A stretch of DNA of 64,000 nt from Macrostomum hystrix (Eukaryota; Animalia; Platyhelminthes), in assembly GCA_950097015.1 (NCBI GenBank), contig CATNEN010000005.1, positions 2,852,001-2,916,000 on the forward strand, in the 5' to 3' direction. The first letter of the stretch is position 1; every line of letters starts with the position of its first letter. Positions 4,363-59,800 of this stretch are shown one piece after another. The position numbers and the translations under genes are program-made. The notes beneath the pieces are model-generated. The model saw only the letters and a program-made list of their open reading frames with translations. It was not told the origin of the DNA and ran no database searches.

Positions 4363-7300
4363 ATGCCCGAAACGATGCAAGACGAGGATATAATCAGCCT
4401 CCTACGGCAGCAGATGGAAGAAGAGCGCCAACAGCGGAACGCTGACCGGCAGATGATGCTCGACCTCATTCGGTCTCTAAAGCCTGCAGCGGACCAGTCC
4501 CAGGCTGCAGCTTTGCCGACGCATGTGACGACGTCGACTCCGAGTTTCTCGCCATTCGACGCCACGTCCGAGCTCTGGCCCGACTACTTGGCCAGATTCT
4601 GCACCTTCACGGGCGCGAACTCCATACCCGACGACAAGAAGGCTCAGGTGTTCCTGACGAACCAGTCTCCGTCTGTCTACAAGCTTCTCTCAAACTTGGC
4701 AGCGCAGCAGACGCCGCGGAAGGAGATCAACACGCTCACTATGGACGAGATTGAGAAGTTCATGGAAGAACAGTATGACACCAAGCGCTTCATCGTGCGG
4801 GAGCGTTTCCGGTTCTGGAGCGACATGCGGCGGAAACCGGGTGAGACGATCCAGGAACTGGCTGCGAGAATCCGCCAGGACGCAACCACCTGCGATTTCT
4901 CTTCCATCAAAGATCCACTGGACGAGGCGCTGCGCACGCGTTTCATCTGCTCAGTGAGGAACGAAGCAGTACACAAAGCTTTGTTCAAATTAAAGGTGGA
5001 AGAGCTCACGTTCGCCCGGGCTGTCGAGATCGCCATCGAGACAGAGGAAGCCGCCCGAGTCGCCAAGGAGACGGTTTACGGCGACAAATCCAGCCCCGTT
5101 AACAAGGTTAAGCAGAAGGTTCGGCGACCCGGAGCCACTTCGGCGAAATTTACGACAGATTCTACTGCTTCCAGGTCTACTACTGACTCTGCGTCTGGTT
5201 CGTGCTACCGCTGCGGAGCGAAGAACCATCGGGCAAACGATTGCCGATTCAAAGACGCGACCTGCCGGCACTGCAAAAAGGTGGGTCACCTAGAACCCGT
5301 CTGCCGTTCCAACGCCAAAGGATCTGCCCCTGCGGCGAACTTCAAGAAGCCAGTGAAACAGGTCGAGGAGCATGTGCTTGTACGTGCTGTAGCCCAAACC
5401 GAGGACGACCTGCCTAAGCTGGAAGTGTCGATCCACATCCAAGGCAAGGCTCTCGCCATCGAGGTCGACACTGCGACAAACGGCAACTTCATCACAGAGT
5501 CATTCTGGAAGAAGCTGGGGACGCCGCCGCTCGAAGTAGCGATGTCACGCTACGAGTCCGCCAGCCGACACGACTTACCTGTACTAGGTACCTTCGTCGG
5601 GAAAACGACATTGCCTGGCTCAGCTCCTGAGCACGACATCCAGTACATCGTCACACAGGTGCCCGGCTTGAATCTACTCGGCCGGACCGCCACGAAGCTG
5701 TTGGGAATCTCCGTCGACAAACTGCTCGGCGCTGCCAGCGCCATTCAAGAAGTCAACGCAGTGTTTGACCACCTGCCGCCGGACGAGGCTCTTCAAAAGG
5801 CCTGCCGAAATCTTTGCGACGAATTCCCGGACCTGTGGAAGGACGAGCTGGGTTGCCTCAAGGACTTCAAGCTCGAGTTGCAGTTTAACCCGGATGCAAA
5901 GCCGGTGTTCCGGAAGGCTAGGCCTGTCCCCTTCGCCATCCGCGAGGAGCTCGAGCGCGCCTACGACGAGGGCATCAGGAGAGGCATCTGGGAGCCTACT
6001 GACTTCAATGACTACGGGACGCCCGTGGTCCCCGTGCGAAAGCCCTCGACCGGCTCAGAGCAGCCGAAACTGCGAGTCTGCGGAGACTACTCGTGCACTA
6101 TCAACCCGCAGCTGGAAGACAACCGTCACCCGCTGCCCCTCCCAGAGGAACTGCTACAGAAGCTGGGAGGCAGCTACTGCTTCTCAAAGGTAGATCTGGC
6201 CGACGCCTACAACCAGATCGAGTTGGGACCGATGAGTCAGAGGCGCCTGGCACTGAGCACCCACCGGGGTGTGCTTCTTCAGAAGCGGCTCGCTTTCGGC
6301 CCGAAGTCTGCAGTGGGTGAGTTCCAGTTCATCATGGAAATGGTAGCCGGTGATCTGCCCGGAGTCGTTTTCTACTTGGACGACTACCTGGTCGGCGGCG
6401 CGACCGCTGATGAGCATCTCGCAAACCTACGCCGGTTTTTCCAACGCCTTTCTGACAAGGGACTTCGCTGCCGACGGGAGAAGTGCAAATTCGCCATGCC
6501 CAGCATCGAGTACCTTGGCTATGTACTGTCGAAAGAAGGCATCGCCAAGGGAACCAAGGTGGACGCTGTCCGCGAAATGCCTCCACCAAAGGACGTGTCC
6601 AGCCTCCGGTCATTCCTCGGCTCGGTCCAGTTCTACGCAAAGTTTCTGCCGCCAAGCATGGCCACGATCTCTGAGCCGCTGTACCGACTCACCAGGAAGG
6701 ACGCACCATGGACATGGGGCGACGCGGAGCAGCGGGCCTTCGAACAGATCAAGGAGGAGCTCTCGTCGGACAACGTGCTGGTCCACTACAATGCCGACCT
6801 CCCTCTCGGGCTCTCCTGCGACGCATCCAACGTCGGGATCGGCGCCGTCCTGTTCCACCGCTACCCGGATGGTAGCGAGCGGCCGATCGCCAACGCTTCA
6901 AAGTCTCTGACGGATGCTCAGCGCCGCTATCCTCAGATTCAGAAGGAAGCCCTTTCAATCATCTTCGGCCTAAAGAAGTTTTTCCAATACTTGTTCAACC
7001 GCAAGTTCATCCTGGTCACGGACCATAAGCCGTTGATTTCTCTATTCGGGCCCGAGAAGGAGACACCAGTAATGGCGGCAAACCGGCTGGCACGGTGGGC
7101 TAACCTGCTCCACAACTTCACCTACGAAGTCGAGTACCGCCAGACCAAGAGTCACGGAAACGCGGATGCCCTGAGTCGCCTGCCAATGGGAGACGACCCA
7201 GATTTCGACGGGGAGGAGAGCGCAGCCGACTTCGACACGGTCTGCGCGATCAAGGTCCTAAGCTTGCAAATCCAGCCGGCTGACGCCTCAGCCGTGGCCA

Positions 7301-8625
7301 AAGAATCATCGAGGGACCCGGTGATCTCCACCGTCATGCGCTACTGTCGAGAAGGATGGCCACCAGACAGGCGAGACGAAGACGCCGAGGTGGCCCGCTT
7401 ACGGAAGGTCAAAGATTCGCTCTCCTGCTGCAACGGATGTCTTCTGCATGGCTGTCGTCTTGTGATTCCTCGGAACCTCCGGAATGAGGTGCTGAAAATC
7501 CTCCACCTCGGACACTTTGGAATACAGAGGATGAAGCAGCTGGCTCGATCGGCAGTCTACTGGCCGAACATCGACGACGACGTCGAGCACCTGTGCCACG
7601 GCTGCCACAGCTGTGCTGAGCACCAAAATCATCCGCCAAAGGCCGCCGTTCATCCGTGGATGATGCCTGAGAAGCCTTGGAGTCGCCTACATCTGGATCA
7701 CGCAGTCAACTTCCTCGGCACCAACTGGCTAGTGCTCACGGACGCCTACTCGAAGTACCCGTGCATACACCCGACGCAATCCATGTCAACGCGGGCAACG
7801 ATCGAGCTTCTGGAAGAAGACTTTGCCCACTTCGGCTACCCTCACGCCATCGTCACTGACAATGCAGCGGCATTCATGGCTGAGGAGTTTCAAGCTTGGT
7901 GTCGCGAACACGGCATCGCGCACCTCACAGGAGCTCCGTATCATCCTGCAACAAACGGAGCGGCCGAACGACTGGTTCAGACCTTCAAGAAGGCCCTGAA
8001 GAAATCCAGCCTGCCACCTGCCAGGGCGCTACAGCAGTTCCTGATGCAGTACCGACGGACTCCTGCGGTCAACGGCTACTCTCCGAGCGAACTCCTAAAT
8101 GGCCGGCAGATCAGGACGCAGATTGATACTCTGCTGCCATCTCCAGCCCATCTCGCCCAGGATCGCCAAGTCAAGCAGGCCGAAGAGTCCAGAGCTCGGA
8201 AAAAGGTGTCTCGCGTCCGAGAAGGCTACAACGTCGGAGATCCGGTCTACGCTCGCTACTACGGACCACGCCGCGAGAAGGAAGGCCGCTGGGTTCCGGC
8301 AGTGGTCACCAAGCGGCACGGCAGCCGCAGCGTCAAAGTCAAGGTTGTCCCAAGCGGCCCGGTGTGGCGACGGCACTTCGACCAGCTTCAACCGCGACAC
8401 GTGTCCGCGGAAGACAGCGAGCCAGGATCACTGCCGACTCAACAAAACGAAACGGCCGGCCACCTGATGCTGCCGGCCACACCAGCGGTGGCACATCCAG
8501 GATCTCGACCCAGGCCTCCAGGATGGCGAGCGCCGGACCAAGTCCAACACCCGCCGCCCTACGGACCAGATAATCCACGACGGTCGGCTAGGCAGCGAAA
8601 GCCACGGCTACAAATGGACTTATAG
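4363..8625 (+). CDS. Gag-Pol polyprotein, 1420 aa (Gag with two CCHC knuckles, aspartic protease, RT, RNase H, integrase)
   Basis: CYRCGAKNHRANDC and CRHCKKVGHLEPVC knuckles; protease EVDTA; RT FSKVDLADAYNQ and YLDD; RNase H CDASNVGIGAVL; integrase HLGH..CHSC zinc finger and DDE core (HLDHA, TDNA, NGAAERLV). Confidence 0.97.
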   Translation: MPETMQDEDIISLLRQQMEEERQQRNADRQMMLDLIRSLKPAADQSQAAALPTHVTTSTPSFSPFDATSELWPDYLARFCTFTGANSIPDDKKAQVFLTNQSPSVYKLLSNLAAQQTPRKEINTLTMDEIEKFMEEQYDTKRFIVRERFRFWSDMRRKPGETIQELAARIRQDATTCDFSSIKDPLDEALRTRFICSVRNEAVHKALFKLKVEELTFARAVEIAIETEEAARVAKETVYGDKSSPVNKVKQKVRRPGATSAKFTTDSTASRSTTDSASGSCYRCGAKNHRANDCRFKDATCRHCKKVGHLEPVCRSNAKGSAPAANFKKPVKQVEEHVLVRAVAQTEDDLPKLEVSIHIQGKALAIEVDTATNGNFITESFWKKLGTPPLEVAMSRYESASRHDLPVLGTFVGKTTLPGSAPEHDIQYIVTQVPGLNLLGRTATKLLGISVDKLLGAASAIQEVNAVFDHLPPDEALQKACRNLCDEFPDLWKDELGCLKDFKLELQFNPDAKPVFRKARPVPFAIREELERAYDEGIRRGIWEPTDFNDYGTPVVPVRKPSTGSEQPKLRVCGDYSCTINPQLEDNRHPLPLPEELLQKLGGSYCFSKVDLADAYNQIELGPMSQRRLALSTHRGVLLQKRLAFGPKSAVGEFQFIMEMVAGDLPGVVFYLDDYLVGGATADEHLANLRRFFQRLSDKGLRCRREKCKFAMPSIEYLGYVLSKEGIAKGTKVDAVREMPPPKDVSSLRSFLGSVQFYAKFLPPSMATISEPLYRLTRKDAPWTWGDAEQRAFEQIKEELSSDNVLVHYNADLPLGLSCDASNVGIGAVLFHRYPDGSERPIANASKSLTDAQRRYPQIQKEALSIIFGLKKFFQYLFNRKFILVTDHKPLISLFGPEKETPVMAANRLARWANLLHNFTYEVEYRQTKSHGNADALSRLPMGDDPDFDGEESAADFDTVCAIKVLSLQIQPADASAVAKESSRDPVISTVMRYCREGWPPDRRDEDAEVARLRKVKDSLSCCNGCLLHGCRLVIPRNLRNEVLKILHLGHFGIQRMKQLARSAVYWPNIDDDVEHLCHGCHSCAEHQNHPPKAAVHPWMMPEKPWSRLHLDHAVNFLGTNWLVLTDAYSKYPCIHPTQSMSTRATIELLEEDFAHFGYPHAIVTDNAAAFMAEEFQAWCREHGIAHLTGAPYHPATNGAAERLVQTFKKALKKSSLPPARALQQFLMQYRRTPAVNGYSPSELLNGRQIRTQIDTLLPSPAHLAQDRQVKQAEESRARKKVSRVREGYNVGDPVYARYYGPRREKEGRWVPAVVTKRHGSRSVKVKVVPSGPVWRRHFDQLQPRHVSAEDSEPGSLPTQQNETAGHLMLPATPAVAHPGSRPRPPGWRAPDQVQHPPPYGPDNPRRSARQRKPRLQMDL

Positions 8626-17937: not shown

Positions 17938-18683
17938 TTAAGTGTAACTGTAGAATATTACTTAACAGTTTCATTGTGAATTTTTATTCGTAACTGGTTG
18001 TGAATTATCGCTTAGATTTTTTCCGTCTAATTAATATTTGTTTTAGACTCAACTTTACTGCTTCTTTAAAGTTGTAGTAACTAATAAATTATTATTTATT
18101 ATTATTATAGTTTAAAACAAAGTTTATTTTTGACTCGCTTTGTTATCAACGGAAACATATTTAATTACCATAACACTAAACATGTTTTCAATACTTGTTG
18201 ACTAGATATTATTTGTCAAGCAAGCTATACTACTATTAAAAAAAGGCAAGTTTTCTTTAAAGTAGGATCATGCGAATGTTTTAAAATTCAAATTGCTTAA
18301 CTATATATCAATCGGTAATTTAATTATGCTCCATTGTAATGCATTCAATTTTTATCTTGTCAGTTATTTATATCAAGCTGAATTGATACTAATATTTCAA
18401 GCGCTTAATGCATTTTTTTATTCATCAACTCCATGGCGAAGAATTCTTTGTAAGTAAAAATTCTTTCTTAAATAATAATTAATATGCGAAAGCGAAGCAT
18501 TGCTAGGTACTGGTATTGTGTTTATATAAAAATTCCAGTGTGCTTACTACAATGTGTACATTTGTTTTATTCTATTTACAATTCTACTTCCATCAAGAGT
18601 GAATATGGTGGAATCAAATATGAAATTGATCTAATCAAAACATGTCGATGTTGGAGTTAAGGTTCCAATCCTCTTCGCTTCCG

Positions 18684-19230
18684 TCTCTCCATCCTCTCAC
18701 TCTAGGTCTCTCCCATCCTCTCACCCTAGGTCTCTCCATCCTCTCACCCTAGGTCTCTCCATCCTCTCACCCTAGGTCTCTCCATCCTCTCACCCTAGGT
18801 CTCTCCATCCTCTCACCCTAGGTCTCTCCATCCTCTCACCCTAGGTCTCTCCATCCTCTCACCCTAGGTCTCTCCATCCTCTCACCCTAGGTCTCTCCAT
18901 CCTCTCACCCTAGGTCTCTCCATCCTCTCACCCTAGGTCTCTCCATCCTCTCACCCTAGGTCTCTCCATCCTCTCACCCTAGGTCTCTCCCATCCTCTCA
19001 CCCTAGGTCTCTCCCATCCTCTCACCCTAGGTCTCTCCCATCCTCTCACCCTAGGTCTCTCCCATCCTCTCACCCTAGGTCTCTCCCATCCTCTCACCCT
19101 AGGTCTCTCCCATCCTCTCACCCTAGGTCTCTCCCATCCTCTCACCCTAGGTCTCTCCCATCCTCTCACCCTAGGTCTCTCCCATCCTCTCACCCTAGGT
19201 CTCTCCCATCCTCTCACTCTAGGTCTCTCA
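18684..19230. repeat. 23/24-bp minisatellite
   Basis: Unit CCATCCTCTCACCCTAGGTCTCT(C); the left part is mostly 23-mers and the right part 24-mers. Confidence 0.96.
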
Positions 19231-19291: not shown

Positions 19292-20494
19292 TTGTGTGCA
19301 TTGTTATGCATAGCTGCTTAGACAAAATCATTACATTGGTCTTCCCGAAACCCTTTTCACTGCCCAGAAACACTCACGTGCGCAATATTTTAGAATTTAA
19401 TGTATCGTTTCAATTTACTTTGATATATTCACCAAGAGAAACTGTTGTCATGTTTACTTCGTAGAAAAAGACATTTTTAGATAACCGATCCGGTACTACA
19501 GACCGAATACAGGCCCTATCAGCCAGTCGTTCAGCATTGTTGGTGGCAGACGTCTGATTCTCACACTGAGGTCATGAGTTCGAATCCACTTTGGTAAAGC
19601 ATTAGAAAGGCAAATTTCTTGCAATGAAAATGTTTAGCAACTTAAGATTCACGCTCACACAAAGACTTAAAGCACAACTTTAATTTAAGCTTGTAAATGG
19701 ATAACCATACTAAACTGGGCTAGATACAGTCTGTTACAGAATGAGTTATAGTTTCGCAATGGATGTCTATCTAAAGCTACAGTACATGCGAGCTGCTCAG
19801 AGAGTCGTGGGTCGAGTCCGGTCAGTTTCCAGGTGCAGTCGGGGTGTCTGGCAGCTGCGCCCATCTACTTGCCGAACGGCAGATTCCGGTAGATTCGGTA
19901 GACCCTTTTGGCGACTCTCCAGACTTTCCTCCACCTGAACTTCTTCTCCAGCGTGAGGGCCTTCGCCTCCGCCATCTCCGGCTCGTCCATGTCCGCCAGC
20001 GCCTCCAGCGCCCGCAGAGTCTCCGCGTCCACCTCCGACGTCTCCTGGCTGGGTCTGGCGGCTGCCAGAGCTGCGCAGAGCAGGAGTCCGAGAGCTAGCT
20101 GCCACTTCATGATTGTGCTGCTGCTGCTGCTGCTGATGCTTGAGTGATTATGCTTGAAGCAGATTGTAGGAGCTCAGAGCTTGGCTTGGAGATCCTCTCA
20201 GGTGCCTGCTATATATGCACTTGAAAGCGACACGTTTTTCCGACTGCTCAAGCGCACTTCGGAAACTGTCTCAAAAGCATCTTTCCTGTTCAATTTGGTA
20301 TTGAAGAGGGCATTTTGAGCACTGAGCTGAAATACAAGTTGCTCAATTGCTTATAAAATGCGGCTTCAAGATCAAATGACATTGCAGTACGAGCTATTCT
20401 TATTATTCAGCACTATGGTGTGGCCAGGTAGATCTTTCCTTATAATTACGTAAGCCAGGAAACAATGGCTGACCCTTCGACCTTCTGGGTGGAC
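19292..20494 (-). repeat. Left arm of a 1.2-kb inverted duplication
   Basis: Near-identical reverse complement of 23163-24365, covering the promoter, CDS and 3' region. Confidence 0.93.
19865..20110 (-). CDS. Secreted cationic peptide precursor, copy 1 (81 aa; candidate antimicrobial peptide)
   Basis: Signal peptide MKWQLALGLLLCAALAAA, acidic pro-region, KK, then FRWRKVWRVAKRVYRIYRNLPF-GK. GC-rich, intronless, with a TATA-like TATATAG at about 20210-20217. Confidence 0.88.
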   Translation of the reverse strand: MKWQLALGLLLCAALAAARPSQETSEVDAETLRALEALADMDEPEMAEAKALTLEKKFRWRKVWRVAKRVYRIYRNLPFGK

Positions 20495-20568
20495 AAAATG
20501 ACTAGAGGCAAAGGCTTAGTATTTGTTCTTAAAGGTATATGAACTATTACTGTCAGCACTCAGCCATA

Positions 20569-21493
20569 GAAGTGATGGAATCGGATATGGAAGTGATGGA
20601 ATCGGGTATAAAAGTGATGGAATCGGATATGGACGTGATGAAATCGGATATGGAAGTGATGGAATCGGATATGGGAGTGATGGAATCGGATATGGAAGTG
20701 ATGGAATCGGATATAGAAGTGATGAAATCGGATATAGAAGTGATGGAATCGGATATGGAAGTGATGGAATCGGATATAAAAGTGATGGAATCGGATATGG
20801 AATTGATGGAATCGGATATAAAAGTGATGGAATCGGATATGGAAGTGATGAAATCGGATATGGAAGTGATGGAATCGGATATGGGAGTGATGGAATCGGA
20901 TATGGAAGTGATGGAATCGGATATGGAAGTGATGGAATCGGATATAGAAGTGATGGAATCGGATATGGAAGTGATGGAATCGGATATGGAAGTGATGAAA
21001 TCGGATATAGAAGTGATGGAATCGGATATGGAAGTGATGGAATCGGATATAAAAGTGATGGAATCGGATATGGAAGTGATGGAATCGGATATAAAAGTGA
21101 TGGAATCGGATATGGAAGTGATGGAATCGGGTATAAAAGTGATGGAATCGGATATGGAAGTGATGGAATCGGATATGGAAGTGATGGAATCGGATATAGA
21201 AGTGATGGAATCGGATATGGGAGTGATGGAATCGGATATGGAAGTGATGGAATCGGATATGGAAGTGATGGAATCGGATATAAAAGTGATGGAATCGGAT
21301 ATGGAAGTGATGGAATCGGATATGGAAGTGATGGAATCGGATATGGAAGTGATGGAATCGGATATAGAAGTGATGGAATCGGATATGGAAGTGATGGAAT
21401 CGGATATGGAAGTGATGGAATCGGGTATAGAAGTGATGGAATCGGATATGGAAGTGATGGAATCGGATATAGAAGTGATGGAATCGGATATAG
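20569..21493. repeat. 21-bp tandem repeat between the two peptide genes
   Basis: Unit GAAGTGATGGAATCGGATATG; several frames are open simply because the unit lacks stop codons. Confidence 0.96.
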
Positions 21494-21984
21494 AAATCAA
21501 AGTAACAATTCAAAAAATTGTGAATGTTATATCTCGAATCCTATGAGCAGAGAAAGTTGCGTTTAGTTGCAGTGGGCAAAGACAAATTTCAGCTTAAAGT
21601 TTTGACAGATGACATGAACTCCTGATCCTCCAAAGCATTCAAACTGCGCAATGCTTTTAATTGACGCACTTGAAAGTCGTAGAAAGTCAGATGGAACTCG
21701 GCCTTGACTGATGCTACCTCTTTCCGGGTTTTGCGTTAGGCAATGCCTAAATAGATTTATTTCTTCACTGGAAAGTGAAAATTTTCTTTTTACGATCTTA
21801 GATTATATGCCTTACTTTTATTTAATTTCTGCTGTAAACTTTCTTTACTTTTGAATTTCCTAAAAACAATCAGTCAAAAAGTCAATTTTTAGAAGTCACA
21901 TCAAATAAAACCATGTTTTCTACTATTTATCCACTCTGTCTTCTTCTCTCCCCAAATATTTTCCTTCTTAGACTCTCATATCCT

Positions 21985-23155
21985 GTCTCCCATCTTCTCA
22001 CCCCAGTCTCTCCCAGTCTCTCACTCCAGTCTATTCCATCCTCTCACTCCAGTCTATTCCATCCTCTCACTCCAGTCTCTTCCATCCTCTCACTCCACTC
22101 TCTCCCATCCTCTCACTCCAGTCTCTCCCATCCTCTCACTCCAGTCTCTCCCATCTTCTCACTCCACTCTCTTCCATCCTCTCACTCCAGTCTCTCCCAT
22201 CCTCTCACTCCAGTCTCTCCCATCCTCTCACTCCACTCTCTTCCATCCTCTCACTCCAGTCTATTCCATCCTCTCACTCCAGTCTATTCCATCCTCTCAC
22301 TCCAGTCTCTCCCATCCTCTCACTCCACTCTCTTCCATCCTCTCACTCCAGTCTCTCCCATCCTCTCACTCCACTCTCTTCCATCCTCTCACTCCAGTCT
22401 CTCCAATCCTCTCACTCCACTCTCTCCCATCCTCTCACTCCACTCTCTTCCATCCTCTCACTCCAGTCTCTCCAATCCTCTCACTCCACTCTCTTCCATC
22501 CTCTCACTCCAGTCTCTCCAATCCTCTCACTCCAGTCTCTCCCATCCTCTCACTCCACTCTCTTCCATCCTCTCACTCCATTCTCTTCCACCCTCTCACT
22601 CCAGTCTCTCCCATCCTCTCACTCCACTCTCTCCCATCCTCTCACTCCACTCTCTCCCACCCTCTCACTCCAGTCTATTCCATCCTCTCACTCCAGTCTC
22701 TTCCACTCTCTCACTCCAGTCTCTCTAATCCTCTCACTCCAGTCCCTCCCATCCTCTCACTCCACTCTCTCCCATCCTCTCACTCCACTCTCTCCCATCC
22801 TCTCACTCCACTCTCTTCCACCCTCTCACTCCACTCTCTCCCATCCTCTCACTCCACTCTCTCCCATCCTCTCACTCCACTCTCTCCCATCCTCTCACTC
22901 CACTCTCTCCCATCCTCTCACTCCACTCTCTTCCATCCTCTCACTCCACTCTCTCCCATCCTCTCACTCCACTCTCTTCCACCCTCTCACTCCACTCTCT
23001 CCCATCCTCTCACTCCACTCTCTCCCATCCTCTAACTCCACTCTCTCCTATCCTCTCACTCCATTCCATTCCATCCTCTCACCCCAGTCCCTCCCATCCT
23101 CTCACTCCACTCTCTCCCATCCTCTCACTCCAGTCTATTCCATCCTCTCACCCCT
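21985..23155. repeat. 23-bp pyrimidine-rich minisatellite
   Basis: Unit CCATCCTCTCACTCCA(G/C)TCTCT(C/T); it abuts the right arm of the inverted duplication. Confidence 0.95.
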
Positions 23156-23162
23156 ATCTCCC

Positions 23163-24365
23163 GTCCAACCAGAAGGTCGAAGGGTCAGCCATTGTTTCCT
23201 GGCTTACGTAATTATAAGGAAAGATCTACCTGGCCACACCATAGTGCTGAATAATAAGAATAGCTCGTACTGCAATGTCATTTGATCTTGAAGCCGCATT
23301 TTATAAGCAATTGAGCAACTTGTATTTCAGCTCAGTGCTCAAAATGCCCTCTTCAATACCAAATTGAACAGGAAAGATGCTTTTGAGACAGTTTCCGAAG
23401 TGCGCTTGAGCAGTCGGAAAAACGTGTCGCTTTCAAGTGCATATATAGCAGGCACCTGAGAGGATCTCCAAGCCAAGCTCTGAGCTCCTACAATCTGCTT
23501 CAAGCATAATCACTCAAGCATCAGCATCAGCAGCAGCAGCACAATCATGAAGTGGCAGCTAGCTCTCGGACTCCTGCTCTGCGCAGCTCTGGCAGCCGCC
23601 AGACCCAGCCAGGAGACGTCGGAGGTGGACGCGGAGACTCTGCGGGCGCTGGAGGCGCTGGCGGACATGGACGAGCCGGAGATGGCGGAGGCGAAGGCCC
23701 TCATGCTGGAGAAGAAGTTCAGGTGGAGGAAAGTCTGGAGAGTCGCCAAAAGGGTCTACCGAATCTACCGGAATCTGCCGTTCGGCAAGTAGATGGGCGC
23801 AGCTGCCAGACACCCCGACTGCACCTGGAAACTGACCGGACTCGACCCACGACTCTCTGAGCAGCTCGCATGTACTGTAGCTTTAGATAGACATCCATTG
23901 CGAAACTATAACTCATTCTGTAACAGACTGTATCTAGCCTAGTTTAGTATTGTTATCCATTTACAAGCTTAAATTAAAGTTGTGCTTTAAGTCTTTGTGT
24001 GAGCGTGAATCTTAAGTTGCTGAACATTTTCATTGCAAGAAATTTGCCTTTCTAATGTTTTACCAAAGTGGATTCGAACTCATGACCCCAGTGTGAGAAT
24101 CAGACGTCCGCCACCAACAATGCTGAACGACTGGCTGATAGGGCCTGTATTCGGTCTGTAGTACCGGATCGGTTTGCTAAAAAATGTCTTTTTCTACGAA
24201 GTAAACATGACAACTGTTTCTCTTGGTGAATATATCAAAGTAAATTGAAACGATACATTAAATTCTAAAATATTGCGCATGTGAGTGTTTCTGGGCAGTG
24301 AAAAGGGTTTCGGGAAGACCAATGTAATGATTTTGTCTAAGCAGCTATGCATTACAATGCACACG
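23163..24365 (+). repeat. Right arm of the 1.2-kb inverted duplication
   Basis: Reverse complement of 19292-20494. Confidence 0.93.
23547..23792 (+). CDS. Secreted cationic peptide precursor, copy 2 (81 aa; candidate antimicrobial peptide)
   Basis: Identical to copy 1 except T versus M in the pro-region (ACG/ATG). TATA-like ATATATAG at 23441-23448, ATCATGA start context, ATTAAA polyA-like signal at 23973-23978. Confidence 0.88.
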   Translation: MKWQLALGLLLCAALAAARPSQETSEVDAETLRALEALADMDEPEMAEAKALMLEKKFRWRKVWRVAKRVYRIYRNLPFGK

Positions 24366-24432
24366 ATCTATTAATAGTAGGAAATAGTTTTAAATATTGA
24401 ATTATGTTAGCGATTATCCTCTCCCTGAGAGA

Positions 24433-25200
24433 CAGGGGTGAGAGGATACTGGAGACTGGGGTGAGAGGATACTGGAGACTGGTGTGAGAGGATACTGGAG
24501 ACTGGGGTGAGAGGATACTGGAGACTGGGGTGAGAGGATACTGGAGACTGGGGTGAGAGGATACTGGAGACTGGGGTGAGAGGATACTGGAGACTGGGGT
24601 GAGAGGATACTGGAGACTGGGGTGAGAGGATACTGGAGACTGGGGTGAGAGGATACTGGAGACTGGGGTGAGTGGATACTGGAGACTGGGGTGAGTGGAT
24701 ACTGAAGACTTGGGTGAGAGGATACTGGAGACTGGGGTGAGAGGATACTGAAGACTGGGGTGAGTGGATACTGAAGACTGGGGTGAGAGGATACTGGAGA
24801 CTGGGGTGAGAGGATACTGGAGACTGGGGTGAGAGGATACTGGAGACTGGGGTGAGAGGATACTGGAGACTGGGGTGAGAGGATACTGGAGACTGGGGTG
24901 AGAGGATACTGAAGACTGGGGTGAGAGGATACTGAAGACTGGGGTGAGTGGATACTGGAGACTGGGGTGAGAGGATACTGGAGACTGGGGTGAGAGGATA
25001 CTGGAGACTGGGGTGAGAGGATACTGGAGACTGGGGTGAGAGGATACTGGAGACTGGGGTGAGAGGATACTGGAGACTGGGGTGAGAGGATACTGGAGAC
25101 TGGGGTGAGAGGATACTGGAGACTGGGGTGAGTGGATACTGAAGACTGGGGTGAGTGGATACTGAAGACTGGGGTGAGAGGATACTGAAGACTGGGGTGA
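24433..25200. repeat. 23-bp G-rich minisatellite
   Basis: Unit GGGGTGAGAGGATACTGGAGACT; its reverse complement shares ATCCTCTCACCC with the 18.7-kb array. Confidence 0.96.
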
Positions 25201-25629
25201 GGTCTACTCTCTGACCCTCTCTTTTTCTTTTTAATATTATCAATTCTATTCGCGAGCTTCTATAATCGATTCACCCATCCTCTCACCCCAACCTTTCACT
25301 CCTGTCTCTCCTATACGTTTAACCCAATAAATAGTTCGAGCTGATGCAGAATCGGACAGAGTTCAATATAAATCAATAGTAATTGAATAATTAAACGGAT
25401 GGCATACTTAGTTGCTGATTATTATTCCGAGAAACTTAGGAGAATAGACCGGAAGGAACATTATAATGCTGGGTAAAGCGCCAACACTGGAGGATAAGTG
25501 ATTGGTTTTGAAATTCCCATTGTACTGGGCTAGGTAATGTACAGCTAAGTTGAAGATTGGATACGACAATGGATTCTCTGGTATTGTAAGTCACCTAGAT
25601 CTTTTTAACAGACACGGGTTAATTATTAG

Positions 25630-53813: not shown

Positions 53814-56800
53814 TAATAGAAGCTGCGGCAGTTCAATCTCCTGCTGGTTACCATGACAACGCAGGATTCAACTATTATTATTAAACTCTGGGACAGGTGA
53901 ACAAAACATACTCAACGAAATCTGATTCAGTTTGAGATAACATGTGATATGAAACTTTATCTGAACTGACTGAGAATTGACCTGAACTGATTGAGAAGTG
54001 ACATGAACTGATTGAGAATTGACCTGAACTGACGGATAATTAACCTGAACTGATTGACAATTGACCTGAACTGATTGAGAATAGACCTGAACTGATTGAC
54101 AATTGACCTGAACTGATTGAGAATTGACCTTGAACTGATTAAGAATTGACCTGAACTGATTGAAAATTGACCTGAACTGATTGAGAATTGACCTGAACTG
54201 ATTGAGAATTGAGCTGAACTGATTGAGAATTGACCTGAACTGATTGAGAAGTGACCTGAACTGATTGAGAATTGACCTGAACTGATTGAGAAGTGACATG
54301 AACTGATTGAGAATTGACCTGAACTGATTGAGAATTGATCTGAACTGATTAAGAATTGACCTGAACTGATTGAGAATTGACCTGAACTGATTGAGAATTG
54401 ACCTGAACTGATTGAGAATTGACCTGAACTGATTGAGAATTGACCTGAACTGACTAAGAATTGACCTGAACTGACTGAGAATTGACCTGAACTGATTAAG
54501 AATTGACCTGAACTGATTGAGAATTGACCTGAACTGATTGAGAATTGACCTGAACTGATTGAGAATTGACCTGAACTGATTGAGAATTGACCTGAACTGA
54601 CTAAGAATTGACCTGAACTGACTGAGAATTGACCTGAACTGATTAAGAATTGACCTGAACTGACTGAGAATTGACCTGAACTGATTAAGAATTGACCTGA
54701 ACTGATTGAGAATTGACCTGAACTGATTGAGAATTGACCTGAACTGACTAAGAATTGACCTGAACTGACTGAGAATTGACCTGAACTGATTAAGAATTGA
54801 CCTGAACTGATTGAGAATTGACCTGAACTGATTGAGAATTGACCTGAACTGATTGAGAATTGACCTGAACTGATTGAGAATTGACCTGAACTGATTGAGA
54901 ATTGACCTGAACTGATTGAGAATTGACCTGAACTGATTGAGAATTGACCTGAACTGATTGAGAATTGACATGAACTGATTGAGAATTGACCTGAACTGAT
55001 TGAGAATTGACCTGAACTGATTGAGAATTGACCTGAACTGATTGAGAATTGACCTGAACTGACTAAGAATTGACCTGAACTGACTGAGAATTGACCTGAA
55101 CTGATTAAGAATTGACCTGAACTGATTGAGAATTGACCTGAACTGACTGATAAGTGACCTGAACTGATTGAGAATTGACCTGAACTGATTGAGAATTGAC
55201 CTGAACTGATTGAGAATTGACCTGAACTGATTGAGAATTGACATGAACTGATTGAGAATTGACCTGAACTGATTGAGAATTGACCTGAACTGATTGAGAA
55301 TTGACCTGAACTGATTGAGAATTGACCTGAACTGATTGAGAATTGACATGAACTGATTGAGAATTGACCTGAACTGATTGAGAATTGACCTGAACTGATT
55401 GAGAATTGACCTGAACTGATTGAGAATTGACCTGAACTGACTAAGAATTGACCTGAACTGACTGAGAATTGACCTGAACTGATTAAGAATTGACCTGAAC
55501 TGATTGAGAATTGACCTGAACTGATTGAGAATTGACCTGAACTGATTGAGAATTGACCTGAACTGATTGAGAATTGACCTGAACTGATTGAGAATTGACC
55601 TGAACTGATTGAGAATTGACCTGAACTGATTGAGAATTGACCTGAACTGATTGAGAATTGACCTGAACTGATTGAGAATTGACCTGAACTGATTGAGAAT
55701 TGACCTGAACTGACTGATAAGTGACCTGAACTGATTGAGAATTGACCTGAACTGATTGAGAATTGACCTGAACTGACTGATAAGTGACCTGAACTGATTG
55801 AGAATTGACCTGAACTGATTGAGAATTGACCTGAACTGATTGAGAATTGACCTGAACTGATTGAGAATTGACATGAACTGATTGAGAATTGACCTGAACT
55901 GATTGAGAATTGACCTGAACTGACTGATAAGTGACCTGAACTGATTGAGAATTGACCTGAACTGATTGAGAATTGACCTGAACTGATTGAGAATTGACCT
56001 GAACTGATTGAGAATTGACATGAACTGATTGAGAATTGACCTGAACTGATTGAGAATTGACCTGAACTGATTGAGAATTGACATGAACTGATTGAGAATT
56101 GACCTGAACTGATTGAGAATTGACCTGAACTGATTGAGAATTGACCTGAACTGATTGAGAATTGACATGAACTGATTGAGAATTGACCTGAACTGATTGA
56201 GAATTGACCTGAAATGACTCAGAATTGATCTGAACTGATTGAGAATTGACCTGAACTGATTGAGAATTGACCTGAACTGATTGAGAATTGACCTGAACTG
56301 ATTGAGAATTGACCTGAACTGATTGAGAATTGACCTGAACTGATTGAGAATTGACCTGAACTGATTGAGAATTGACCTGAACTGATTGAGAATTGACCTG
56401 AACTGATTGAGAATTGACCTGAACTGATTGAGAATTGACATGAACTGATTGAGAATTGACCTGAACTGATTGAGAATTGACCTGAACTGACTGATAATTG
56501 ACCTGAACTGATTGAGAATTGACCTGAACTGATTGAGAATTGACATGAACTGATTGAGAATTGACCTGAACTGATTGAGAATTGACCTGAACTGACTGAT
56601 AATTGACCTGAACTGATTGAGAATTGACCTGAACTGACTGATAATTGACCTGAACTGATTGAGAATTGACCTGAACTGATTGAGAATTGACCTGAACTGA
56701 TTGAGAATTGACCTGAACTGATTGAGAATTGACCTGAACTGATTGAGAATTGACATGAACTGATTGAGAATTGACCTGAACTGATTGAGAATTGACCTGA

Positions 56801-59800
56801 ACTGATTGAGAATTGACCTGAACTGATTGAGAATTGACATGAACTGATTGAGAATTGACCTGAACTGATTGAGAATTGACCTGAACTGATTGAGAATTGA
56901 CATGAACTGATTGAGAATTGACCTGAACTGATTGAGAATTGACCTGAACTGATTGAGAATTGACCTGAACTGATTGAGAATTGACCTGAACTGATTGAGA
57001 ATTGACCTGAACTGATTGAGAATTGACATGAACTGATTGAGAATTGACCTGAACTGATTGAGAATTGACCTGAACTGACTGATAATTGACCTGAACTGAT
57101 TGAGAATTGACCTGAACTGACTGATAATTGACCTGAACTGATTGAGAATTGACCTGAACTGATTGAGAATTGACCTGAACTGATTGAGAATTGACCTGAA
57201 CTGATTGAGAATTGACATGAACTGATTGAGAATTGACCTGAACTGATTGAGAATTGACCTGAACTGATTGAGAATTGACCTGAACTGATTGAGAATTGAC
57301 ATGAACTGATTGAGAATTGACCTGAACTGATTGAGAATTGACATGAACTGATTGAGAATTGACCTGAACTGATTGAGAATTGACATGAACTGACTGAGAA
57401 CTAACCTGAAATGACTCAGAATTGATCTGAACTGTCTGGGCATTGACCTGAACTGATTGAGAATTGAACTGAATTGATTGAGAATTGAACTGAATTGATT
57501 GAGAATTTACCTAAAAGGATTTAGAAGTGACCTGAACAGATTGAGAGGTGAACTGAACTGATTTCAGTACCACTTAATGATTTACTGAAACTAACCTTCC
57601 GAACTGCTTAATTATAAAAATAAAATATGTTCGCTGCTGATTACTGAAAGCAACTACGAGTATTTGAATGAGGCTCGAAATTTTCTGTTGGTTATTTGTA
57701 TACGTAAAACTTCCAAGAAATAGAAAAAGTTGTATTAGCTAACCTCAATATGGCCCAGAGCTGTGACAAACTGACCAACTGATTCGATCAGAGCAATGTC
57801 TGTCAGTTTCAGCGGGAACAGCAATATTGGCCCACTGCCGGGCGACTCCGAAAACCTGCCTCTCTGGCTAGCGCTGTCACCAATGTAGTCTGCGTCTCGA
57901 TCCTGACTGCCAGTGTCTTCATCGTCAACGACGTCTTCGTGGGCAGCCGATGCTGGCAGCTGACACCAAACTGGGTAACGATCCTGTGGAGATAGATTGG
58001 AGAACTGACTAGCTAAACCTCATTTAGCTAACCTAAGTCATGTAGCTCTAACCTAAACCTCATTTAGCTAACCTAAGTCATGTAGCTCTAACCTAAACCT
58101 CATGTAGCTAACCTAAGTCATGTAGCTCTAACCTAAACCTCATGTAGCTAACCTAAGTCATGTAGCTCTAACCTAAACCTCATGTAGCTAACCTAAGTCA
58201 TGTAGCTCTAACCTAAACCTCATGTAGCTAACCTAAGTCATGTAGCTCTAACCTAAACCTCATGTAGCTAACCTAAGTCATGTAGCTCTAACCTAAACCT
58301 CATGTAGCTAACCTAAGTCATGTAGCTCTAACCTAAACCTCATTTAGCTAACCTAAGTCATGTAGCTCTAACCTAAACCTCATTTAGCTAACTTAAGTCA
58401 TGTAGCTCTAACCTAAACCTCATGTAGCTAACCTAAGTCATGTAGCTCTAACCTAAACCTCATGTATCTAACCTAAGTCATGTAGCTCTAACCTAAACCT
58501 CATTTAGCTAACCTAAGTCATGTAGTTCTAACCTAAACCTCATGTAGCTAACCTAAGTCATGTAGCTCTAACCTAAACCTCATGTAGCTAACCTAAGTCA
58601 TGTAGCTCTAACCTAAACCTCATGTAGCTAACCTAAGTCATGTAGCTCTAACCTAAACCTCATTTAGCTAACCTAAGTCATGTAGCTCTAACCTAAACCT
58701 CATTTAGCTAACCTAAGTCATGTAGCTCTAACCTAAAACTAGTAGCTCTAACCTAAAACTAGTAACCCTAACCTAAAACTAGTAGCTCCAACCTAAAAAC
58801 CTATAGCCCCAACCTAAAAACCTGTTGCTCTAATTTTGCACACTGATTATTATACTTTCTCACCTGCAACAGTTGCGGCAAGTCTTGCATATCCCAGCAA
58901 AAATCTTCAATAGCGTAGGCCAACGCCTCGTCTAAGCTGCCATGCTGCGTCAGTGTCCCGACAACTTCCTGCTGCAGCTCGCGATCTTCGATGTCAATCA
59001 GCTGTTCGAGGCGTTCCGACATTGCGGCTCGACTTAGGCAACGATGAATGAGTCGCCTGTTGGTGTGCAGAAATTGTCATCAAATCATACAATTTAATTT
59101 AAAACGGTCAGGCAAATTTAGTCAGTTTTTAGTTCGAGCTTGACAATCCGGTTGTCCCAATTGCATTATTTATAATCATAAACAATATATCAAGCTAAAT
59201 AAACTAACTTTGCGACAATCTAAAACAGATTTCCTCTACTGTAAATAATTATCGAAGTATTATACGAGCCTCGTACGATAAAAAGCATTATTATGAAAAA
59301 AAAGAAAGTAAAAATCAAGGAAAAATGAGAAACAACAATCTATTAAATCTTAAAAAATCCACATGAGAACCAACAATCTCGTCATCAGGATCAAGAATCT
59401 CATAATGAGAATGAAGAATCTCATCATGAGAATCAAGAATCTCATCATTAGAATCAAGAATCTCATCATGAGAATCAAGAATCTCATCATGAGAATCAAG
59501 AATCTCATCATGAGAATCAAGAATCTCATGATCAAGAATCGTGAGCCCCTCAACTCACTGCTGTAGCAGGAAGCGGACCTTGGCGGCAGTCTGTTTCCGG
59601 GCCCTGGCTGGGCACACAGCAGCGGCATCCAAGCCGAACTTCTTAGACAGCCGGTCCAGCAGTTTGCGCAGCTGCTGGGGAAACAGTTTGTCGGCTCGCA
59701 GATCCGGCAGTCGGCGATCGTTCAGCTCCAGCACCAGATTCCGACGCGTTTCCAGGGCGTCGTCAAGGCAACGCAGAGCGGCAATCTGGGCCTGGGGACT

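Follow-up and report, generated by a model that had tools for sequence, protein, structure and literature searches.

What do two nearly identical small genes in the flatworm Macrostomum hystrix encode, and what kind of product would they give? The genes lie in a 64,000-nucleotide stretch of contig CATNEN010000005.1 (GenBank assembly GCA_950097015.1, positions 2,852,001 to 2,916,000 of the forward strand), which is referred to here as the window, and all positions below count from its first letter. A first reading of this DNA, made without database searches and called here the sequence-only reading, had taken the genes for two copies of a precursor of a novel amidated antimicrobial peptide. By sequence comparison, the pair belongs to a multigene family of predicted secreted prepropeptides that is specific to Macrostomum flatworms. 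The reading that we favor, at a probability of roughly 0.55, is that the mature part of the precursor (the payload) would be an amidated, amphipathic-helical 22-mer of charge +9, membrane-active and serving as a defence or cytolytic peptide.

The gene pair and its relatives

The open reading frame (ORF) list and translation gave two ORFs of 81 amino acids in the window, one on each strand (Table 1) and exactly where the sequence-only reading had placed them. Both begin with a hydrophobic signal peptide of 18 residues ending in Ala-Ala-Ala, which is followed by a pro-region of 39 residues (19–57) that holds 11 Asp/Glu and closes with KK. The predicted payload of both copies, FRWRKVWRVAKRVYRIYRNLPF, is a 22-mer with six Arg, two Lys and no acidic residue, and Gly-Lys and the stop codon come directly after it. 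This layout, including the count of eight basic residues, agrees throughout with what had been described. The two proteins differ solely at residue 53 (Thr in copy 1, Met in copy 2) and, as the pro-region includes this residue, both copies have the same mature peptide, again as had been claimed. The genes had been called intronless; this holds for the coding sequence, and the M. lignano homologues are likewise annotated as single-exon coding sequences.

A word-index protein search identified 12 Macrostomum lignano “hypothetical proteins” (E 3e-31 to 7e-6), and a profile search over 1.84 billion representatives matched 13 proteins, the ten that were looked up being M. lignano entries or one Logan contig. 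The existence of homologues to E = 3e-31, together with a ratio of nonsynonymous to synonymous divergence (dN/dS) below 1, puts the window ORFs far beyond chance. In total, 36 distinct family members with 27 distinct payloads were collected. The profile match P0020, a 3739-residue repeat protein, was rejected as a relative, as its resemblance was spurious-looking and confined to eight residues of the “LSDIDE” type.

No named family was matched in Pfam, in PDB sequences or in the literature, but the genes are no orphans, as nameless M. lignano homologues have been in GenBank since 2017. The window protein had no Pfam hit at E ≤ 10, and the 14 family members scanned gave sub-threshold noise besides a weak match to PF22991 (“Gag1-like lock”; best E 3e-6) in eight of them, which was discounted as probably compositional and was not seen in the window protein. 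The PF22991 matches occurred in M. lignano short-type members (e.g., P0006 and P0008), apparently via the acidic propiece. A search of PDB sequences with the 22-mer returned nothing at E ≤ 10, and an exact look-up in a collection of 15 billion proteins found neither the two 81-residue proteins nor any of ten other window ORFs. Full-text literature searches for Macrostomum antimicrobial, cationic or amphipathic peptides, for payload strings and for M. lignano gene identifiers found nothing on a Macrostomum prepropeptide family, and the supplements of M. lignano papers held no family gene identifiers.

As a yardstick of species divergence, and solely for that use, we took an RCC2-like (RCC1-repeat) ORF of 321 residues in the window. 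Its best M. lignano match has 542 residues, so the ORF probably represents a single exon of some larger gene. The identity between the two was only 63%, which indicates that the window species differs from M. lignano and that the prepropeptide family is at least genus-wide. The prepropeptide cassette (signal and propiece) is better conserved between the two species than this housekeeping gene.

A constant cassette and promoter with varied payloads

Across the 36 distinct members, the 18-residue signal peptide has a mean identity of 0.80. The window signal fits the family pattern M[KR]WQ[LF][AV]LGLLLCAALA.., and its first 16 residues (MKWQLALGLLLCAALA) are the same as in short-type members. The propiece is acidic, Cys-free and 34–40 residues long, with a conserved L-EAL..DE core and KK site; L35, E36, L38, D42, E43, K56 and K57 are invariant in our alignment (A1).

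The payloads are of several unrelated classes: Trp/Arg helices of 20–37 residues, the subfamily to which the window pair belongs; alternating Arg/Val 8–10-mers with a strand-type hydrophobic moment of 1.3–1.4 at 180 degrees; a Pro/Arg repeat peptide; a Cys-loop peptide with two Cys; and His-rich 6–7-mers. A C-terminal Gly or Gly-Lys(-Arg) is present in 21 of the 27 distinct payloads (GK in the window pair); that payloads with nothing else in common have kept this Gly speaks for selection on amidation. The charges of propiece and payload are opposed (Spearman −0.87, n = 26, a coefficient that carries no independent-sample probability as the members are mutually related), which is the compensation expected of a propiece that would neutralize its payload. 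Among long-type members, divergence climbs at both nonsynonymous and synonymous sites from signal (dN 0.04, dS 0.13) to propiece (dN 0.13, dS 0.33) to payload (dN 0.30, dS 0.87). Judged from these alignments, the payload evolves faster than the rest of the precursor, changing also by insertion and deletion of Arg-Ile or Arg-Val units.

A shared promoter accompanies the cassette. At every family gene examined across three genomes we identified an element at the same spacing, the 12-nt CGGAAA[A/C]ACGTG, located 25 nt before a putative TATA box (CATA[A/T]AT) and 112–132 nt before the ATG. The two exact matches to the 12-mer within the window are those of the gene pair, and up to one mismatch gave four matches versus 0.18 expected by chance. 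Over the window and the M. lignano loci, the exact 12-mer occurs 18 times, always at a family gene or the remnant of one, and the Logan contig, a third source, has a one-mismatch version (AGGAAAAACGTG) at the same spacing. The 12-mer joins a GGAA core and an ACGTG core. Strikingly, its distance to the TATA box is fixed at 25 nt, both for the window element and at loci L001–L007.

Evidence for expression of the family came from sequencing runs. Two of these, X6 and X7, carry the same species label as a DNA run, X2, and behave as RNA libraries, since there is almost no intergenic flank in them. The family 5′ cassette is very abundant in both, the signal/pro region of paralogues reaching summed word depths of 6e4 to 1.4e5. 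The lone match to the payload region of the window pair was a 197-nt contig in X1, a probable RNA run of another organism; it covers 23710–23876 at about 96% identity and has an Asn76-to-Ser change. In addition, an in-frame 5′ untranslated region (UTR) and the label “partial” mark several gene models of M. lignano, which were therefore taken as transcript-built.

Together, these observations suggest a broader reading, which we hold tentatively and at somewhat less than even odds. It is that of a genus-wide “locked cassette” arsenal, in which a promoter of about 130 bp, the signal and the acidic propiece would be kept near-constant over dozens of paralogues and between species with housekeeping proteins only about 63% identical, unrelated payloads would be swapped or diversified behind them, and copies would be born and lost through minisatellite-linked duplication and truncation.

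Predicted maturation and function of the payload

The sequence-only reading had placed the hydrophobic residues of the 22-mer on one helical face, and the predictions bear this out. The helical hydrophobic moment is 0.58 (p = 0.044 versus 5000 shuffles) and reaches about 1.0 in 11-residue windows over residues 2–18. AlphaFold2 predicted helices at residues 4–18, 27–39 and 48–76 of the precursor, with the best confidence over the payload (predicted local distance difference test, pLDDT, 72–81; mean pLDDT 64.7).

Maturation would begin with cleavage by signal peptidase after Ala18, and the propiece, acidic and helical with a net charge of −8 when the KK site is left out, would neutralize the cationic payload in transit. 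A prohormone-convertase-type enzyme would then cut after Lys56-Lys57, Lys81 would be taken off by a carboxypeptidase, and peptidylglycine amidating monooxygenase would convert Gly80 to a C-terminal amide. The product would be FRWRKVWRVAKRVYRIYRNLPF-amide, a 22-mer of charge about +9, whose amphipathic helix (residues 2–18) would bind and disrupt anionic membranes, so that it would be a host-defence (antimicrobial) or cytolytic secretion. We infer the processing steps from established secretory-pathway enzymology, and secretion, membrane activity and biological target in like manner.

Dibasic cleavage and Gly-directed amidation are also the classic neuropeptide route, and M. lignano has a PC2 homologue that is expressed in the nervous system (PMC4490696). 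The product might then be a neuropeptide or hormone of the regulated secretory pathway whose amidated C-terminus (...YRIYRNLPF-amide, or the RF-, RL- and RI-amides of paralogues) acts on a receptor. Consistent with this, some paralogues would end in ...VRF-amide, as in flatworm FMRFamide-like peptides, the long subfamily keeps its C-terminal 13 residues from species to species, and dN/dS is below 1. We nevertheless consider a neuropeptide quite unlikely. Dozens of paralogues stand on one promoter with payloads that have neither length nor charge nor predicted structure in common, and the C-terminal residue is variable (F, L, I, H, K). It is the signal and propiece that are conserved rather than the peptide, the opposite of typical neuropeptide precursors; a charge of +9 to +18 would be unusual in a receptor ligand, and the depth in the RNA-like runs is extreme. 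Furthermore, the internal Lys-Arg ahead of VYRIYR is not kept in paralogues, which have SR, RT, RL or RR instead, and release of the full-length peptide is therefore likelier than that of a short VYRIYRNLPF-amide. The known flatworm FMRFamide-like and NPF neuropeptides differ as well, as they have a conserved RF-amide (or GRPRF-amide) and usually a single-copy precursor, whereas the window peptide would end in LPF-amide and Macrostomum C-termini vary between paralogues that exist in dozens of copies.

Several results weigh against a membrane-active defence or cytolytic peptide, to which we return here. Some payloads (GFHVHFH, FIHIHF, AVYKPNYYKD) are nearly uncharged, which is atypical for antimicrobial peptides. 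Members of the window subfamily from different species share the C-terminal RVYRIYRxLP[F/I/L]GK, which a specific receptor or target could also explain. In X6 and X7, neither the payload of the window pair nor most of its 3′ UTR had any depth (at ≥80% likeness), which is weak evidence of absence since assembled contigs drop rare variants. Finally, positive selection was not demonstrated, dN/dS being 0.32–0.40 in all three regions of the precursor by the Nei-Gojobori method, with no arms-race signature. The antimicrobial-type precursor proposed by the sequence-only reading is supported in part: the architecture was found to be real and was strengthened by the family, the promoter, the payload diversity, the nearly universal C-terminal Gly or Gly-Lys and the charge compensation, while positive selection was not seen.

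A membrane-active peptide need not serve defence. The family could instead supply an offensive or deterrent toxin, a seminal-fluid peptide under sexual conflict, or an Arg-rich product that assembles with anionic mucus, rhabdite or adhesive material. A conserved cassette with a variable payload is equally typical of venom peptides (e.g., conotoxins), and very high abundance fits gland products. The alternating Arg/hydrophobic 8–10-mers are strongly amphipathic as beta-strands (the moment of 1.3–1.4 given above) and self-assembly-prone, and PMC7336406 reports fast evolution of reproduction-related genes in Macrostomum. On the other side, no paper in our literature search connected peptides of this kind with adhesion or seminal fluid in Macrostomum, and sequence does not allow membrane-active toxins to be told apart from antimicrobial peptides by mechanism. 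We regard such a role as unlikely, although with a real share of the probability.

The precursors were compared with known systems. Among those closest in design are the frog skin precursors (dermaseptin, brevinin, temporin). In these too, signal and acidic propiece are conserved, a dibasic site is present, and the cationic amphipathic payload is hypervariable and in many cases Gly-amidated; they likewise form large multigene families. In protein-language-model features, which we treat as a lead only, the nearest clusters were frog dermaseptin, brevinin, temporin and bombinin precursors (scores 0.77–0.79). Sequence homology was absent: the frog domain PF03032 (FSAP_sig_propep) gave no hit at E ≤ 10 and none in the 14 members scanned. 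The cleavage site is KR in the frogs and KK in the flatworms, and frog skin peptide genes carry an intron whereas the Macrostomum coding sequence is a single exon. The arminins and periculins of Hydra are likewise taxon-restricted and combine a signal and an anionic N-terminal part with a cationic active peptide at the C-terminus. However, no cnidarian protein appeared in the profile search of 1.84 billion representatives, and arminins do not carry Trp/Arg-helix payloads ending in GK. Cathelicidins resemble the family in placing unrelated payload classes (helical, Pro/Arg-rich, Trp-rich, disulphide loop) behind one conserved pro-cassette, but their cathelin domain (about 100 residues, four Cys, PF00666) is absent here; there was no Pfam match, and the window propiece has 39 residues and no Cys.

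Conotoxin precursors share the gradient of divergence from signal to propiece to mature peptide that was seen here at both kinds of site. They differ in that Macrostomum payloads are linear and nearly all without Cys, and that dN/dS is not above 1. According to PMC3708846, the helminth defence molecules (HDMs), such as Fasciola HDM-1, are secreted flatworm products with a C-terminal amphipathic cationic helix, as would be the window peptide. The word-index and profile protein searches showed no similarity to them; HDMs are reported to be parasite immunomodulators without antimicrobial activity, and they are without the KK/Gly-amide processing architecture. From these comparisons, the Macrostomum prepropeptides appear to be built like the frog, Hydra and cathelicidin precursors, yet to form an independent, taxon-restricted family.

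In the literature searched, no gene-encoded antimicrobial-peptide family was described for free-living flatworms, and a review of planarian immunity mentions antimicrobial peptides for other animals only. If the locked-cassette reading is true, free-living flatworms would gain their first gene-encoded antimicrobial-peptide system, a convergent counterpart, within a transgenic model animal, of cathelicidins and the skin peptides of frogs. Being large, taxon-restricted and very abundant, and having the classical host-defence precursor design, such a family would supply candidate effectors, and would form a natural series of minimal cationic peptides, from 6–10-residue Arg/Val or His-rich amides to Trp/Arg helices of 35 residues. 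M. lignano, a close relative of the window species, can be manipulated by RNA interference and, according to PMC5730564, is amenable to transgenesis. The compact invariant promoter (12-nt element plus TATA box) could serve directly as a cell-type-specific reporter and help to track down the transcription factor that controls the family. The window pair itself adds a cross-species anchor with M. lignano and an example of inverted-repeat duplication beside minisatellites.

The inverted duplication and its surroundings

The two genes are arranged head-to-head, with divergent transcription, inside an inverted duplication of about 1.2 kb whose arms are 98.8% identical (15 differences in 1202 aligned positions). 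In the independent DNA run X2, contig depths were 81 and 86 where the arms differ and 163 where they are identical. The presence of both arm variants as separate half-depth contigs indicates that the duplication is real and no assembly artefact. The arms are separated by a spacer of 2.7 kb made up of 21-bp and 23-bp minisatellite. Beyond the unique-sequence part of the arms, similarity runs on at about 90% into 23-bp minisatellite, down to about 18715 on the left and up to about 24930 on the right. Based on the arm alignment, the pair is a recent inverted duplicate of one family member.

Such an origin raises the question of whether the window pair is a silent or decaying young duplicate of an active family. 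The zero depth of its payload and 3′ UTR in X6 and X7, where paralogues are very abundant, would fit this, as would a location rich in minisatellites and retrotransposons and the frameshifted and truncated copies in M. lignano clusters. Against it, the ORFs, promoter element, TATA box and processing sites are intact in both copies, and the arms have fewer differences in the 5′ region and coding sequence (3 in 630 nt) than in the 3′ flank (12 in 571 nt; Fisher p = 0.017). The X1 contig, from a probable RNA run of a related organism, also matches the payload and 3′ UTR at 96% identity. We judge a silent or decaying pair to be improbable.

The family genes of M. lignano are single-exon and clustered. 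Locus L003 (27 kb) has three intact copies, two frameshifted copies and two copies cut after ten codons by a minisatellite, as well as a head-to-head gene pair resembling that of the window; L007 (20 kb) has five family copies. Based on the two copies cut after codon 10, minisatellites may drive both duplication and loss. In GenBank, the model behind P0001 (139 residues) spans the 27 kb of L003 (NIVC01001664, 10001–37330). It is a chimeric annotation, in which the initial exon-like portion of one family gene has been fused to another, complete family gene at a distance of 27 kb, and the real products at this locus have 88–95 residues.

Table 1. Positions of the gene pair, the inverted duplication and other features in the window
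Feature	Positions	Strand	Basis or remark
Copy 1 coding sequence, 81 aa + stop	19865-20110	-	ORF list, translation
Copy 1 signal peptide	20057-20110	-	translation
Copy 1 propiece	19940-20056	-	translation
Copy 1 payload	19874-19939	-	translation
Copy 1 Gly-Lys	19868-19873	-	translation
Copy 1 upstream element	20231-20242	-	same 12-mer as copy 2; motif search
Copy 1 putative TATA box	20210-20217		mirror of copy 2
Copy 1 candidate polyadenylation signal ATTAAA	19679-19684		mirror of copy 2; read from sequence
Copy 2 coding sequence, 81 aa + stop	23547-23792	+	ORF list, translation, homology, helix prediction
Copy 2 signal peptide	23547-23600	+	translation
Copy 2 acidic propiece ending KK	23601-23717	+	translation
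Copy 2 payload, 22-mer	23718-23783	+	translation
Copy 2 Gly-Lys	23784-23789	+	translation
Copy 2 stop	23790-23792	+	translation
Copy 2 upstream element CGGAAAAACGTG	23415-23426	+	25 nt before TATA box, 132 nt before ATG
Copy 2 putative TATA box CATATATA	23440-23447	+	
Copy 2 candidate polyadenylation signal ATTAAA	23973-23978	+	read from sequence
Left arm of inverted duplication, unique-sequence part	19294-20494		arm alignment
Right arm of inverted duplication, unique-sequence part	23163-24364		arm alignment; both variants in DNA run X2
Spacer between divergent promoters	20569-23166		
21-bp minisatellite in spacer	20569-21495		
23-bp minisatellite in spacer	21986-23166		
GGATTCGAACTC-containing stretch, right arm	24060-24145		possibly a degenerate tRNA-derived SINE
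Mirror of this stretch, left arm	19512-19597		
RCC2-like ORF, 321 aa	12304-13266	+	63% identity to best M. lignano protein
1420-aa ORF	4363-8625	+	apparently retrotransposon pol
1191-aa ORF	53868-57443	-	probably a coiled-coil protein

Between 15119 and 29132, the window has unusually dense long minisatellite arrays with units of 20–32 bp and lengths of 0.5–1.8 kb each. Three related 23-bp arrays bracket the gene pair (18683–19229, 21986–23166 and 24429–25201).

Both arms contain a stretch that includes GGATTCGAACTC and resembles the reverse complement of a tRNA T-arm; it is possibly a degenerate tRNA-derived short interspersed element (SINE). ARAGORN found no tRNA in this stretch (about 24070), which is tRNA/SINE-like by eye, and Rfam returned nothing meaningful on the right arm. 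A scan for bacterial-type promoters and terminators, of a type irrelevant here, was empty.

Two long ORFs lie further from the genes. The ORF of 1420 residues, situated in a G+C-rich block (55–58%), carries domains for reverse transcriptase, RNase H and integrase and is apparently the intact pol of a Ty3/gypsy-type long terminal repeat (LTR) retrotransposon. The ORF of 1191 residues matches dozens of unrelated coiled-coil Pfam models, and probably encodes a long repetitive coiled-coil protein.

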